Part shown: piece by piece, positions 1 to 6,800 of the stretch | Position numbering within the stretch: the first letter of the stretch is position 1 | How the letters are laid out: every line of letters begins with the position of its first letter | NCBI GenBank assembly: GCA_965644295.1 | Contig: CBFFRP010000346.1 | Coordinates: 1 to 64,000, forward strand | Direction of reading: 5' to 3' | Origin: Paraphysomonas bandaiensis | Lineage: Eukaryota; Protista; Chrysophyceae | Length of the DNA stretch: 64,000 bases | Made by a program: the position numbers and the translations under genes | The notes under the pieces: model-generated | The model's database searches: none | Told to the model about the DNA's origin: nothing | The model's input: the letters and a program-made list of their open reading frames with translations, nothing else

Positions 1-753
1 GCAGCCGACGTAAAATCTCTGGCCTCTACGGTCTTCGACGATTGCACGACTTATTGACAGGTTATCCAACCTCCTGTTATAATGAGCAGACAGCAATATA
101 TAGTGATATAATAGCCCACACTTATCATGGACCTCGAGGTCAATGAATAATTTCAGCGGGGTGTTATTAGGATCACTCATAAATGGTTTGTGAACAAAAC
201 ATTGCTCACACCCTGCTAACGTAACAGAGAGTGACTCTGACGAAGATTTGAAGAGTGCAACGAATGTAGATAGGTAATCTACGGCGGCCACGTCACCGTT
301 TCCGTCTGCTGTAGCAGCATTAGCAACCACATCAGTTGCTTCAGCAACTACATCAGTAGTATCAGTAACTACATCAGTTGCATCGGCAACTACATCAGTT
401 GCAACATCAGCCACATCAGTTGCATCGGGAACTACATCAGCTGCAACATCAGCCACATCAGTTGCATCGGGAACTACATCATTTGCATCGGCAACTACAT
501 CAGCTGCAACATCAGCCCCATGAGTGGCATCAGCAACAGAATCAGTTGCATCAGCAATCACATCATAGGGGACAACCTGAGAATCTTCATCAAAAAGTCC
601 ACGCACTTCTTCCTTGTCTACTGTGTGACACGGTTCACACAATAACTTTAGAGCCGAACATCCCTTCTCTGCGATTATAAATTGTGACCCACATCGTGAG
701 CACTGATCAAAATCATCAGTGTCACTAGTAGAAGAATCTGAGTCACAGCTCAT
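1..753 (-). CDS. Hypothetical protein (runs off the left edge) with N-terminal CxxC...CxxC putative Zn-binding motif and Asp/Val/Ala-rich repeats; possible second gene of the DUF7869 element
   Basis: ATG at 753-751, then 251 stop-free codons to position 1: MSCDSDSSTSDTDDFDQCSRCGSQF...LLCEPCHT...DVVADATDVVPDATDV. It is absent from the ORF track, presumably because no stop lies in the window. Confidence 0.65.
   Translation of the reverse strand, partial: MSCDSDSSTSDTDDFDQCSRCGSQFIIAEKGCSALKLLCEPCHTVDKEEVRGLFDEDSQVVPYDVIADATDSVADATHGADVAADVVADANDVVPDATDVADVAADVVPDATDVADVATDVVADATDVVTDTTDVVAEATDVVANAATADGNGDVAAVDYLSTFVALFKSSSESLSVTLAGCEQCFVHKPFMSDPNNTPLKLFIDLEVHDKCGLLYHYILLSAHYNRRLDNLSISRAIVEDRRGQRFYVGC
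330..555. repeat. Coding minisatellite (21-bp-based units such as ACTACATCAGTTGCATCGGCA) encoding DVVADAT-type repeats on the minus strand
   Basis: Repeated acatcagttgc/acatcagctgc units read directly from the sequence. Confidence 0.85.
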
Positions 754-1229
754 AGTTTACTATATTAATATTATATGGTCAATGCCAAATATATATTAAT
801 ATAGTAATATGGTCAACGTTGTGTGTATATGTATATATATAATGGTGTGTTAAGTTATGCATATATATTATGGTCATGATGTGCGTGTTGTAAGCACTGC
901 TCGTGCAGTGTGGTTGCGGTGTTGTGTGATGCACACCGCGTCCTCACCACACACTCATGACGCGTGTTCGATTCTCTTGTGGGGTGCTTTTGGTCAAATT
1001 CAAATTTTTTTTGTACGTGTTTTTCTATATGTTATGCTGCGCTTGATCTGTGGGGTGATCTGAGAGCATATTTGAAAATGCACTTCACTCACAATCATTC
1101 ATATCATTATTATCACACACACTACCACACTAACACAACACAGTAGCTCACAACACTAATAAGTTCTTCGAAGGTAATCACATTGTTCTTGTAAATCTCT
1201 GTATGCGCTGTACTGCCTCTCAACACCAT

Positions 1230-1883
1230 AGTGTATGTTACGCTTTGCCCTGGCTCATAATCTGCTCCGTATGGTTCAGCATGTGCATGTGATGGCATCT
1301 GGTTCATACTTGTATATGTATGACTGTATATAGCGAATTAGAAATGCATCTAGCAGAGTGTGAGTCATTCTTTTGCCCCTGCACAAACTCTGCAACCGGC
1401 AGCTGAACGGGGTTTCACTGCAGGATGTAGCTTGTGCTGAGCGATGGCAATGAATGTTCACTTGTATAATAGTGTATGTTACGCTTTGCCCTGGCACATA
1501 TTCTGCTCCATATGGCCATATGGTTCAGCATGTGCATGTGATGGCATCGGTTTCATACCGTATATGTATGGCAGTATAGCTAGAAAAGCATGTATTTTTG
1601 TACGTGATGTGATTCATTTTTTTGCCCCTGCACAAACTCTGCAACCGGCAGCTGAACGGAGATTCACTGCAGGATGTAGCTTGTGCTGAGCGATGGCATT
1701 AAAAGTTTCACCTGTATATAAGTGTATGTTACGCTTTGCCCTGGCACATATTCTGCTCCATATGGCCATATGGTTCAGCATGTGCATGTGATGGCATCGG
1801 TTTCATACCGTGTATGTATGGCAGTATAGCTAGAAAAGCATGTATTTTTGCACGTGGTGTGATTCACTTTTTTGCCCCTGCAC
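1230..1883. repeat. Tandem array of ~2.6 copies of a 241-250 bp unit
   Basis: GTGTATGTTACGCTTTGCCCTGG recurs at 1231, 1472 and 1722. GCCCCTGCAC recurs near 1376, 1624 and 1874. Confidence 0.92.
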
Positions 1884-1982
1884 GAATAATTCCTTACTTC
1901 TTGTATATATTATTATGTAGTTATGAAAGAACCGTTAGCCCTCTTAAATACATACAGCTCTTCTTGCTGCTGTATCATGTGC

Positions 1983-4808
1983 ATGATGACATGTGCATGT
2001 GACGGTTGCTACTTGTATCGCAACCGCGATCCAAGTGCAGCTTTGATAGCCAACCGGCTGCGCATAGTCTGTCTGGGAGAAATCCGTCGCCTCAATCGGG
2101 ACGAGAAGAGGCTATACCTGCTTAACAAATTCCGCACCTTCCAGGTAAATTTAAATGTTGATTCAATATACATATTTCAATATTCAATAGTAATATCTCG
2201 TTTGTATTTAATAGGTGCGGGTCACGAAGTACAAGAAGTATAAGTTTAGCATTGTGGTGGGGGAGGGGGATAATATGCACCTAGTGTGCCGTATGGGGTT
2301 CTGTTGTGCGTATGCGGTGTCCCATTGGTACGTGGACAACTTAATTTGTCGACTAAAACGAAGGGACATGAACTCTCTGACCGAGTTATCTACTAGCCCC
2401 CGGGCTATCCTATGTGAAGTATCGGACAAAAAGCTCATTGGGTTTGCGTCCAGATTTGGTATAAACTTAAATGTGGAACAGTTGGGTGCCCTCCGAATGT
2501 CAGATTCCGAACAGTCCGCTGTGTGTGCTGCGTGGATGACCTACTATTTTTCACTGGTGGGTGATCAAGTCCCCGACTCTGACTCGGAGATTCACCTCGA
2601 GCCCATTCCTAAGAAGAATGTGTACTCGGAGTACCGCTTTGACATGGAACAGATTAGTGAGATACCACTTCAGCTTCAGACATTCCTGCAGATATGGAAG
2701 AAGATTTTCTCGTACGTCAAGGTTCGGAAATATAAGCAGAGTTGTGGGCATTGCAATACTTGTGCCATGCTTTCGGATAAGCGTCGCCAGTTCAGAGATC
2801 GAAGGGGGCGGGAGGAGATTACGAATCTTTACGCCCTACACCGTCTAAGTACTATGCAGGAACGCCGTCGGTACTACTCCAGACGACTTGAAGCACAGCT
2901 CCCCCCACAGTTAGTACTGTCCACCATTTCAGATGGTATGCAGCAAAATCATTGTATGCTTCCCTGGTTTGGACATAATAAGATGCCTGCCATCCACATC
3001 AAACAACACTTACAGGGTGTGTTGATGCATGGCAAAAATATGACAATATACAGGACTTTTGCCAATGTTGGTGGTGGTGCCAACCTTGCCATACATACAT
3101 GGCTATTAAGTCTGGATGAGCTACACCAGAAGGGAGAGTTGCCAAAGGTCCTCTATCATCAGATTGATGGTGGTTCAGAGAATGCTAACAAGGAAATGTA
3201 TGCCATTTGTGAGCTGCTAGTAGCTTCCGGGCTTGTCGACAAGGTTGTCTTAACAAGACTTCCTGTCGGGCATACGCATGAAGACATTGATGCAAACTTT
3301 GCCCTTATATGGAGAATGCTGCGTGATGAATACATCTGTACTCCCTCGGAATTTTCTACTCTGATTTATAGAGCATTGAAGAAGAAAGTTGAAGTTTCAG
3401 TGATAGACTTATTTGTCCTACCTGATTATTGCAAGATTTTGGAAGGGTGCATTGATGTAGATATCGGCCGCTTCGCAAAGGAGGAGTGGACCCAACTGCA
3501 GTTCACGTTTGAGAGGGTGGTCACTCCTGCCGAGTTGACTGAACATCCTCTTGGCGTGAAGACATCATATCGGGCATATGCCTCAGAGGAATACATCGAA
3601 ATTGTCGAGGACACTGACCAGCAGTCTCTCTGTGGCCTCGTTGCTCAACTTTGTGAAGTGGAGAGTTATCCTCTCCCTAGTGAAAAGCCCTTGAACTTCT
3701 TGAAGAATCTTCCAAGCGGTGACTTTTCCCCAGCCCCCTTCATAGCTGGATCTTTTGAGTTAACTTCAGCTCTGTGCAAGAAAATGATAGAACAATATTC
3801 AACGCATAAGCCGAAGGTGGCCGAGGAATGGAAAGAGTGGCTGGATATTTCTCCCAAGAGTAATAGTGCTCAAGATTTTGTCACCGAAATTGGTGGAATA
3901 TTTATTCCACTAAGAGATGTCCTATTCAGTGGGACTGGAGTGTCCGATTTTGAAGTGGAATGCAGACATAGAGGAGTACGCGGAGGGCTATATGGATCCC
4001 ATGCAGACGGAATTAGGAGGGTCAAGGCTACGGCTTGTGTTCTACACAACGAGAACAAAACTTCCGGCGCAAGGAAGATACCCCCACGAGTTGTCGTCCG
4101 GAATTGTGATGGTTCTACACCCACCGATATGGTCGGAGTCTTGCCCAATGTATACCCCGGCAGAGAAGAGCAGCGTGCGGCGAGGAAGAAGACAAATGTT
4201 GAAAGAAAAGAAGCACGTGCAAAGAAGGCGAGGCTTGATGCCAGGAGGAGGGAGGAAGGCTGGGATTGTGGTGATATAATCGTCAATGACTCAGACGATA
4301 GTAATCAATCTGGTATGTTATTGTGTTGTAGATATTATATTATTATGCCATGTTTATATCTGTACAATATCAGGACAAGAGGTGGAGTCATCATCGTCTG
4401 ATGACGATGGTAACCCCTCTATCACGTATTCTCCTGGGGACGAAATTGTTACTGTGACTAGGATGCGTGGTATTGTCCATGCTGTCAATGATGATGGTAC
4501 CTATCATCTTGTTTACAAAAGCAAGAAGAGATGTGGTGCCACCAGGGAGGATAAGTCAGTGCGCTCCAAATACTTCTCGCTTGCATCTGGTATACTTTAT
4601 ATATATGCTTGTTTGTGTACTGTACCTAATATTGAATATAGCCCACCAGGATAAGCCTCATAATATTCCCTCCAGTAAAAGAGACAATATTCCGAGGTGG
4701 AGATATATCCAGGAACCCACTAAGGAGTGGGTAGACACAGGTGCAGTTGATTCTGCTTCTATTATTACTGGTAAACGTACCAGAAGTTCAGTTGATTATC
4801 GCTTGTAA
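1983..4808 (+). CDS. DUF7869-family (Sola-like) DDD transposase, spliced, with C-terminal Tudor-like segment and CHZ-like motif
   Basis: Motifs CGHCNTC, H....QERRRYY, ISDGMQQ, YHQIDGGSENANK and LPVGHTHEDIDANF. Proposed GT-AG introns 2145-2214, 4313-4373 and 4590-4641 join the ORFs in frame. Start codon uncertain (1923 or 1983). Confidence 0.75.
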
Positions 4809-5027
4809 GTATAGATAGCACTTTGTAATATATATAATAGTGCTATCTATAGTATGCATGTATTAACCGTTACATTAACCGTTACATTCTCACTTTTTGG
4901 ACCTGTAACTAATATAAAACTTATTAAATGTCTCCAAAAACATGTTCTCTTTACACCTACTACATTACTTATTGCAAAACATATAAAAAACACAACTTAA
5001 ATCGACATTTTCAAAATTTCACCAGGT

Positions 5028-6800
5028 TTAGAGCGCTTCTCCAGGTTTGTTCATCACATCAACTTCATATTCATTCAATATTGATTGAAATATGCTTGCA
5101 TCCGGCCACAACTGTCGGTTAGCTTTCAGAAACAACAGCATATTAAGTGTAGTAGGATGCATACGTTTGCGCAACACTGATATAATCAGTTTTGCTGCGC
5201 TGAACAGGCGTTCACACGTATTGGAAGTACATACTACATGACTCGTGCACCTGTACTTAGATATTTCAACTTTTCGCTTCTTAAGTTTTTGAGCTGATTG
5301 AAGAATTTTTTCCGCATAGCCAACTTCAGCTTCATCATCCTCTGTATTGTTGCAATAATCACTGTCTGAACGGAGATATATTCTAACAGCATCTTTCTCA
5401 GATCTTGTCAAGTCCAATTCTTCGCCTGCTTGGAGTTTTGCAATTCCATTCTCGAAATTCGGATCATTAACAATGGGACTGTTTTTCTGTAAAGCAGATA
5501 GTGGATACTTTGGCCTAAAGTCCCTCAATAAGCCATCAAATATGTTCCGGCATTCATAAAGATTCACTTGACTTGATCCTCCAGTTTGAAGCAATTTCGA
5601 GACGCTTTCAAACTTCCTCAGGTCGTCTACAAGGGCGATTATTTCGGTATTCTGTCGAGGAGTAGGAATCATATCAGTAACTGCAAGCGGTAAGTCTTCA
5701 ATTTTTAATACATGATCTTTTATACGCATCCACTTTACGAGAACCTGAAACATAGAAGACCATCTTGTGACATTTACCCTTTCTGGTAGCAGACTGGTTT
5801 GGCCACGTAGCAATGCAGCATTCTTAATCTGCTTCAACTTCCCCATTAGTAGGTCTACTTTGCGAATACGAGGCCTAATGCCTTCGTCAGATCTTGTCAC
5901 ATCTCCTTGGTTATTCCTCTTCTCTTTGCTGCCAATGAGTTCATTGACAGCGAGATTTAGTCGGTGAGATGCACATCCAACTAGGGGTACACCTAATATA
6001 TATTATAACATTCGACAATTTCACACAAGTAATACGGTGTTACCAGAATCAGTAGCCAATTTTCTGTTTGTAGCACAGTTATCTCCAAGATAAAACTCAA
6101 CAATGTCGCAAACATTGTCAGCGTTAACCTCAACTCCAAATTTATTGAGAACTTCTAAGATAGTATCAAACCAATCCGCAGCAGTGAATCCGTAGAATTT
6201 CTCTTCATCAGGTAGATCTTCATCGAAAACAGTGTTGTCATCAATATCCTCTTGCACATTACAAGACAACAATAACAAATTCGGAGTATTGGTTCGGTCG
6301 CAAAAGGTTGCAAATATTGCACTGTAGTGGTGGGAGTCCGACGTCCAACCGTCCATGACTAGACCAAATGTTGGTGGTAATATATCTTTAATCATATCAC
6401 GTAGCTTCAGTTCCAACAGTCTCATATATTTTTTCAGTGTTTTTGTAGTTATCTTACCCAAAGAAGTCTTATTTCTAGTTAATTTCTTCTCACAGAAATT
6501 TAATGGAAGATTTTCCTCGACAATCCACTCCACCCACTCATAAATTGTTTTCGCCTTGTCTGAAGGCTGCAGAACAAAAGCATCCATGGGACCATTGGTG
6601 CAGACAGCCCGTAAATACCTCTTCAATGTCTCCTCCCACACATCATGAGAGAAAGTGTGATCCTTTAGATTGTTGTATCCATTCCGAATATTCTGTTGTC
6701 GTTTACGTCCGCAGATTTTACACTCGTGTTTGTTCGGGACACCTTCGACCGGACTCCAAAAACAGCGGTAAATGTCCCTACTCTTGTATGCACTCATCAT
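5028..6800 (-). CDS. hAT-family transposase (BED zinc finger, DDE core, C-terminal dimerisation domain)
   Basis: CKIC...NLKDHTFSH (BED), GLVMDGWTS, GDNCATN, GCASHRLNLAV, NVTRWSS, TSNTCERLFS and LLFLKANRQLW. A 51-nt GT-AG intron at 5993-6043 joins the two ORFs in frame. Confidence 0.93.

Follow-up and report, generated by a model that had tools for sequence, protein, structure and literature searches.

The choice of target sites in chromatin is understood for few cut-and-paste transposons, and in those few it usually depends on a chromodomain or on a tethering factor of the host. Capture of chromatin readers by transposons is frequent, mainly as fusions with Chromo and PHD domains (bioRxiv 10.1101/2021.11.30.470311), and the integrases of MAGGY-type chromoviruses carry C-terminal chromodomains (Gao et al. 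2008, as cited in bioRxiv 10.1101/2021.11.30.470311). This article describes a stretch of 64,000 nucleotides from the chrysophyte Paraphysomonas bandaiensis (assembly GCA_965644295.1, contig CBFFRP010000346.1, positions 1 to 64,000), termed the window, which opens inside a copy of a recently active and transcribed transposon of about 6 kb with terminal inverted repeats (TIRs). The transposase of this element belongs to the family DUF7869 and may carry its own two-part chromatin anchor, a reading to which we give a probability of roughly 45%. In common with the chromodomain- and PHD-carrying elements, the protein has a C-terminal module of chromatin type with the potential to steer integration. 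In contrast to the Chromo and PHD fusions, the module consists of a cage-less Tudor barrel and a linear motif resembling that of histone chaperones, and it is attached to a DDD transposase of the DUF7869 family. None of the papers searched mentions DUF7869. This large, active and so far uncharacterised family bears its own conserved two-part module of chromatin type, in which one peptide and one small barrel offer a simple and testable system for direct contact between a transposase and the nucleosome.

The closest described counterpart of the peptide is the CHZ motif of histone chaperones. This motif is bipolar, and its arginines touch acidic residues of the histone dimer (PMC3395605) as it runs over the αC helix of H2B toward α2 of H2A (PMC10854748). 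It serves varied proteins for binding H2A-H2B and H2A.Z-H2B alike, and the preference of yeast Chz1 for H2A.Z is due to a C-terminal DEF/Y motif together with helices that flank the CHZ motif (PMC6544321). For HIRIP3, AtChz1 and OsChz1, binding to H2A-H2B is at least as good (PMC6544321, PMC10854748, PMC7658359). H2A is bound by HIRIP3 in vivo, and the flanks of the motif are required for its full affinity (PMC10854748); the preferred partner of OsChz1 is H2A-H2B, which the CHZ domain of OsChz1 on its own failed to pull down (PMC7658359). The CHZ motifs of Chz1, HIRIP3 and OsChz1 and the transposase tail are all short, disordered and bipolar (acidic, then basic), and lie near the C-terminus.

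The spliced transposase gene

The transposase gene comprises at least four exons, of which exons 3 and 4 encode the C-terminal module. Its structure was compared with contigs from X4 and X5, a pair of polyA metatranscriptome runs made on a single marine sample, from a run of the organism itself whose kind is uncertain (X1) and from a DNA-like run (X9). The features of the gene are as follows.

1923..2144, + strand: exon 1, coding, with a Cys-rich N-terminus; open reading frame (ORF) with a phase-0 end at GT 2145
2145..2214, + strand: intron 1, 70 nt, GT..AG; spliced out in X1
2215..4312, + strand: main exon, DUF7869 RNase H-fold DDD transposase core
4313..4373, + strand: intron, 61 nt, GT..AG; spliced out in X1, X4 and X5, retained in the DNA-like X9
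4374..4589, + strand: exon 3, translated as QEVESSSSDDDGNPSITYSPGDEIVTVTRMRGIVHAVNDDGTYHLVYKSKKRCGATREDKSVRSKYFSLAS
4374..4420, + strand: acidic, Ser-rich linker QEVESSSSDDDGNPS, from translation; an acidic linker stands at the equivalent place in all homologues
4421..4589, + strand: predicted divergent Tudor-fold β-barrel with a shortened β1-β2 loop, from profile, AlphaFold2 and Foldseek
4590..4641, + strand: intron, 52 nt, GT..AG, directly after the barrel, its position conserved in homologues; spliced out in X1, X4 and X5
4642..4808, + strand: exon 4, encoding ...EWVDTGAVDSASIITGKRTRSSVDYRL, with a TAA stop
4642..4697, + strand: basic linker SSKRDNIPR, resembling a nuclear localisation signal (NLS), from translation; K/R-rich in all homologues
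4698..4808, + strand: conserved bipolar C-terminal peptide followed by the stop, from alignments of tails
4809..5065, + strand: 3′ untranslated region and 3′ terminus of the element, with the terminal sequence at 5044-5065, ...GGTTTGTTCATCACATCAACTT

Translation probably starts at the Met at 1977, and the Cys pattern of exon 1 agrees with the N-termini of homologues. The 728-codon ORF that begins at 2215 leaves its frame in phase 1 at GT 4313, and removal of both 3′ introns keeps this frame open through 4374-4589 and 4642-4808. A preliminary description of the DNA had proposed that splicing of 4313-4373 and 4590-4641 extends the DUF7869 ORF in this way, and the RNA-derived contigs bear this out, with both introns removed in X1, X4 and X5. 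Record 14 of X4 (828 nt) and record 20 of X5 align to 3847/3918-4311, 4373-4588 and 4641-4785, both introns being gone, while X1 carries both C-terminal joints plus the upstream joint. The latter (2144|2215) is also present in variant copies of X4 and X5, and none of the three joints occurs in X9. The tail encoded by the marine-sample contig is a variant, ...TVAEYRV, similar to the tail of the C28/C4 subfamily, so the copy expressed there is a sister copy with identical splice sites. A paralogue on contig C298 (L038), whose transposase is 43% identical, encodes the acidic linker, barrel, basic linker and tail in a single intron-free ORF of 890 amino acids, which independently confirms the spliced reading. 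In the searches described below, exons 3 and 4 were used individually, with this intron-free paralogue (L038:1285-3954) as their naturally joined counterpart.

The gene encodes a DUF7869-family DDD cut-and-paste transposase with an RNase H fold, in agreement with its earlier identification as a transposase. The main exon matches the Pfam model DUF7869 (PF25273) at E 3e-29, and the triad D240 (2932-2934), D318 (3166-3168) and D357 (3283-3285), in the contexts SDGMQQ, IDGGSEN and GHTHEDID, is invariant across 22 homologues. The AlphaFold2 (AF2) model of the core has a mean predicted local distance difference test score (pLDDT) of 79 and the element order β1-β2-β3-α1-β4-α2-β5 of RNase H. A structural search with the core returned the Mos1 mariner transposase as the best match (E 5e-4), followed by the cores of TnsB, MuA and retroviral integrases; a profile search of the PDB with the whole transposase gave low-complexity noise only, and a language-model feature search with the core gave unnamed clusters only. 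The triad spacing D..D..(39)..D is mariner-like, resembling the DD34D of Mos1 and Tc1-mariner elements, to which the DUF7869 transposase has no match at the level of sequence. It differs from them in its larger size, Cys-rich N-terminus and CGHCNxC motif. The element also differs, being about 6 kb long with two genes, and a constant TA is not seen in the 3′ flanks of its copies, which open with varied dinucleotides (the 3′ side only was compared).

The 62.6-Mb genome contains dozens of copies of the element, with 73-100% identity over the compared stretch. Similarity of the window copy to every other copy breaks off sharply at 5065 (...CATCACATCAACTT), a boundary seen with more than 15 copies whose flanks differ. 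The terminal 22-mer occurs 107 times in the genome (45 forward and 62 reverse; control 0) and forms inverted pairs 0.3-6 kb apart, such as C139:78946(+) and 84906(-), which are separated by 5.96 kb. The TIR pairs, the sharp end and the multiple copies identify the element as a TIR DNA transposon that is about 6 kb long and has short derivatives, and its recent activity follows from the identical copies, the sharp end, the TIR pairs and the short derivatives. The short inverted pairs are probably non-autonomous derivatives similar to miniature inverted-repeat transposable elements; the closest pairs (0.3-1.3 kb) lie at C410:713-1325, C281:196590-196887 and C398:12372-13683. The 5′ end of the window copy lies beyond the contig start, as the contig begins inside the element, and no inverted copy of the terminus occurs in the window or in the loci examined.

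The barrel and its conservation with the tail

The last two exons appear to add, in order, an acidic linker, a divergent Tudor-fold barrel, a basic NLS-like linker and a disordered bipolar peptide of about 30 residues. The Tudor-like segment noticed in the preliminary description is supported as a Tudor-type fold by profile comparison and by models. A family profile of the barrel finds the second Tudor domain of PHF20 in the PDB (3P8D, 3QII and 2LDM, E 0.016-0.034), and the AF2 model of the C-terminus of the L038 paralogue is a five-stranded SH3-like barrel with a pLDDT of 93-96. Searching with this barrel, Foldseek placed the Tudor domains of PHF20, PHF20L1, PHF1, LBR and TDRD3 at the top together with PWWP barrels, with template modelling scores of 0.69-0.76 on the target and root-mean-square deviations of 2.2-2.8 Å. 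A profile of barrel plus tail, compared with 1.84 billion representative proteins, found 889 at E <=0.001. Tandem Tudor repeats dominate this list, with giant repeat proteins in the lead, and the search did not connect the tail with CHZ proteins. Three smaller repeat proteins (ranks ~32-70) were scanned and carry the Pfam domains Tudor_5, Agenet, SGF29_Tudor and 53BP1_Tudor.

The transposon barrel thus has its fold in common with the Tudor royal family (PHF20 Tudor 2, PHF1, LBR and TDRD3; Tudor_5 and Agenet), along with the motif ..G.I....DGTYDV.Y.DG..(D/E)..V. It departs from that family in its shorter β1-β2 loop, which has five residues fewer than in recognised Tudor domains, and in the cage, which is largely gone. 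The first two or three aromatics are lost, so that the β3 Tyr alone is kept of the usual four, and the transposon's own barrel has no score with any Pfam Tudor model. The subfamily of the window is the most degenerate, in that the DG turn is also lost and a 6-residue insert is present. The reading of methyl marks by this barrel is not supported.

Many of the giant proteins in the same library, among them P0056-P0058, reach lengths of up to 7,637 amino acids and contain 13-35 tandem Tudor/Agenet-like units. The unit has the form ..GEKVEAQYKGKSKFYPGVI...NGTYDIDYDDGEKE.., successive units are separated by Ser/Lys/acidic linkers, and such proteins are abundant in the library.

Both C-terminal modules are conserved under purifying selection and are old within the transposase clade. 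Conservation of exons 3 and 4 extends over more than 40 genomic copies and to distant paralogues and homologues, and the tail is kept in paralogues whose transposases show only 43-63% identity. Searched with a tail profile, the genome yields at least 142 matching places. Between live subfamilies the ratio of nonsynonymous to synonymous substitution rates (dN/dS) lies at 0.2-0.4 in exon 3 and at 0.14-0.29 in exon 4, compared with values near or above 1 in dead copies. Among 55 homologues from other public samples, 21 have the barrel and 17 the tail, 13 of them having both and four the tail alone; the linker, barrel and tail recur across paralogues and other-sample homologues.

Eight of the 21 barrel-bearing public gene models lack the tail (P0003, P0004, P0005, P0007, P0008, P0009, P0024 and P0028) and stop ~10-65 residues past the barrel; in six models a PPG motif comes before the stop. 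Judging from their C-terminal sequences, these barrel-only models presumably read through into the conserved intron. With gene models cut short in this position, the tail would be under-reported in databases and missed by domain surveys. The C-terminus of DUF7869 proteins seems to be a swappable accessory slot. P0040, from another DUF7869 clade, has a C-terminal Ulp1-type peptidase C48 domain (PF02902), and the C-terminal ends of P0045 and P0051 resemble SAP-type motifs by eye.

The module might also serve transposition itself, with the barrel binding DNA and the tail binding transposon-end or target DNA or a transposase subunit, and no contact with histones. The structural neighbours of the barrel include a PWWP barrel on single-stranded DNA (6KCO, 6KCP) and the PHF1/MTF2 barrels in DNA complexes, and both the loss of the aromatic cage and the basic character of the tail would suit such a role. 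The presence of the tail without a barrel in four homologues indicates that the two parts are separable, the acidic-then-basic halves of the tail fit a protein surface better than DNA, and the only family-level sequence signals lead to histone-binding motifs. On this balance, a purely transpositional role is unlikely.

The CHZ-like tail and possible contact with histones

The tail follows the pattern W..(acidic)..W.D.GA..S(N)-I/V-I/V-x-G-K-R-x-R..Y, opening with a hydrophobic/acidic stretch and with the Tyr near the stop. Its CHZ-like core (4743-4799) is AVDSASIITGKRTRSSVDY, in which R35 (4776-4778) is invariant in 22 sequences. The AF2 model gives the tail a pLDDT of 55-77 and no secondary structure, a low confidence that fits disorder without proving it.

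CHZ (PF09649) is the only Pfam match of exon 4 (E 0.14) and the only recurrent match among the tails, being found in five of 22. Bit scores are 12.0-12.4 for the window tail, 13.5 for the best member (E 0.049) and 13.7 for the family consensus (E 0.043, profile positions 8-29), and E ranges from 0.04 to 0.18 across tails and consensus. The register is constant over divergent members, at profile positions 8-25/29. When a tail profile was compared with 177,635 PDB sequences, the CHZ motif of OsChz1 (6M2M_M) was among the best four matches, with its residues 31-48 (GIDMSNIITSSRRRSTSN) aligned to tail-profile positions 28-45; the 6M2M entry is that of OsChz1 (PMC7658359). The core D-x-S-N-I-I-T-x-(K/R)-R-x-R aligns with this stretch of OsChz1 and with positions 8-29 of the Pfam profile, and the transposase tail has in addition a conserved W...W.D.G part upstream. 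By comparison, none of ten further charged tails at the C-terminus of DUF7869 proteins matched CHZ (0/10). The constant register, the status of CHZ as the only recurrent match, the appearance of OsChz1 in the top four and the negative controls make the likeness specific and reproducible, yet it is weak. The transposase tail also differs from CHZ proteins in scoring below the family cut-off, in its place at the very end of a transposase and in that its binding of histones is predicted from sequence.

Language-model features place the tail nearest to fragments of SnAC and DUF1087 from chromatin remodellers, with low recognition, and this is a lead only; the Pfam models SnAC and DUF1087 have no match to the tails even at E 10. 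SnAC and DUF1087 fragments carry a similar histone-anchor motif, G-R-x-R-x-x-V-x-Y. The tail pattern G-(K/R)-R-x-R-x-x-V-x-Y is one that we take to resemble the acidic-patch anchors of remodellers, which include SnAC of Snf2/BRG1, DUF1087 of CHD and the acidic-patch-binding motif of ISWI. A search of the genome with PF09649 for a host CHZ protein gave nothing above cut-off, and the best match (C143) has a stop codon and looks like chance. A retropepsin reading of the letters VDTGA was ruled out, as the tail that contains them is disordered and 30 residues long, and conservation of DTGA does not extend beyond this genome.

According to the reading that we favour, the tail would act as a histone motif of CHZ type or as an arginine anchor. 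Through the GKRxR core and the invariant Arg, it would touch the acidic surface of H2A-H2B, on the side of H2B αC and the acidic patch, either in the free dimer or in the nucleosome. The cage-less Tudor barrel would provide a second contact of low specificity, with a histone tail or with DNA, and barrel and tail together would hold the transposase on chromatin and bias the site or the efficiency of integration. The narrower proposal that the tail is a working CHZ-type H2A-H2B-binding motif, which forms with the barrel a two-part nucleosome anchor or a device that grips or displaces the dimer at the integration site, is put forward tentatively.

Several observations weigh against contact with histones. 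The Pfam gathering score for CHZ is 23.3 bits, which is not reached by any tail or by the consensus (12-14 bits), and the family consensus brings no gain in score. With all scores below the threshold, membership of the CHZ family is not established; of the resemblance to CHZ noticed in the preliminary description, what survives is a specific, sub-threshold likeness in constant register. None of the 55 homologues has a precomputed PF09649 annotation, and the OsChz1 match in the PDB has an E of 1.4. The tail is nearly without a C-terminal flank, whereas the rice CHZ domain failed in a pull-down when isolated and HIRIP3 requires its flanks for full affinity. The degenerate aromatic cage means that no ligand of the barrel can be named. 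The KRxR beside the basic linker could be a plain nuclear import signal, and the nesting of copies in repeats described below rests on four insertions, in which survivorship bias is possible.

The import signal leads to the main alternative, which we regard as possible but somewhat less likely: the tail would be mainly an NLS or a docking motif for another host factor, its likeness to CHZ would be due to chance, and the barrel would be a protein-protein or oligomerisation module. The invariant core G-K-R-x-R sits behind a K/R-rich linker, a combination that resembles classical import signals. The sub-threshold scores fit this explanation, as do PDB searches with single tails and with a seven-sequence profile, which returned chance matches only (designed TIM barrels and ribosomal protein S3) and no histone chaperone. 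It leaves the conserved non-basic positions (W, W.D.G, S-N-I/V-I/V and the terminal Y) unexplained, and a plain import signal does not account for fixed spacing over ~30 residues. The other K/R-rich tails of DUF7869 proteins never match CHZ, and the constancy of the CHZ register across divergent members likewise speaks against this alternative.

The preliminary description had gone further, and suggested that a true CHZ motif may tether the transposase specifically to H2A.Z nucleosomes, and that an alternative acceptor at 4649 could switch the tail on or off. The sub-threshold similarity to CHZ and the presence of H2A.Z and H2B genes in the genome are in keeping with this proposal. The H2A.Z gene is intron-free, encodes 158 amino acids with a Gly/Lys-rich (GGK)n N-terminal tail and is present in two copies (L074:1447-1920 (-) and L075), and canonical H2A and H2B genes are clustered and divergent on C407 (H2B at L064:587-937 (-)). 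The published CHZ motif has no preference for H2A.Z, and the elements on which the yeast preference and CHZ affinity depend (the αN/αC helices, the acidic extension and DEF/Y) are absent here; the protein ends 2-7 residues past the motif and lacks a D/E stretch with F/Y after it. Guidance by H2A.Z would therefore not follow even from a true CHZ-type motif, and nothing in the sequence indicates a preference for H2A.Z over H2A. Prediction of a complex of the exon 4 peptide with the genome's H2A.Z (L074:1447-1920:-) and H2B (L064:587-937:-) returned 'no answer', which has no weight either way. No joint in the X1, X4 or X5 contigs uses the acceptor at 4649, although assembled contigs lose rare variants and may miss a minor 4649 isoform; the loose end at 4589 continues with CCCACCAGGATAA, the sequence at the normal acceptor, and the AG at 4649 falls in a Gln codon that divergent copies do not conserve. 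All four insertions examined lie inside other repeats and not at gene starts. H2A.Z-specific tethering with a splice switch is thus very improbable.

If the tail binds H2A-H2B, the use of CHZ-type motifs extends beyond histone chaperones. If the CHZ-type reading is true, the tail is the first histone-chaperone motif in a transposase, and one that is old and widespread in a DUF7869 clade of marine protists.

Insertion context and neighbouring features

The remaining features of the element lie upstream of the transposase gene.

1..1922, strand not assigned: upstream part of the element; window 1-900 matches C132 and C93 at 100% identity
1-753, - strand: divergent ORF, start at 753, cut by the contig start; Cys-rich N-terminus CSRCGSQF...CEPCH and ADATDVV-type repeats
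1228-1883, strand not assigned: 250-bp tandem repeat, 2.7 copies, between the divergent genes and immediately upstream of the transposase start

The minus-strand ORF contains a 21-nt tandem repeat at 317-565, and the complete identity upstream of the transposase in C132 and C93 identifies this ORF as the second gene of the element. The number of units of the 250-bp repeat appears to be different in the C93 copy.

Two minus-strand ORFs, of 259 and 290 amino acids, occupy 5028-6800 of the window. The 290-amino-acid ORF is putatively hAT-like, as suggested by its C-terminal sequence, and the element sits ~37 nt inside its 3′ end, which makes this a nested insertion. In three other copies, the sequence that borders the 3′ end is itself repetitive and occurs 22-72 times or more. 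The nesting is compatible with tethering to repeat-rich chromatin and integration there, or with no more than the survival of harmless insertions. The C362 copy (L009) has a flank that terminates in CCCTAACC, and in the C400 copy (L043) a telomere-type repeat, CTAACCCTAACCCTAA, lies in the flank just past the 3′ end.

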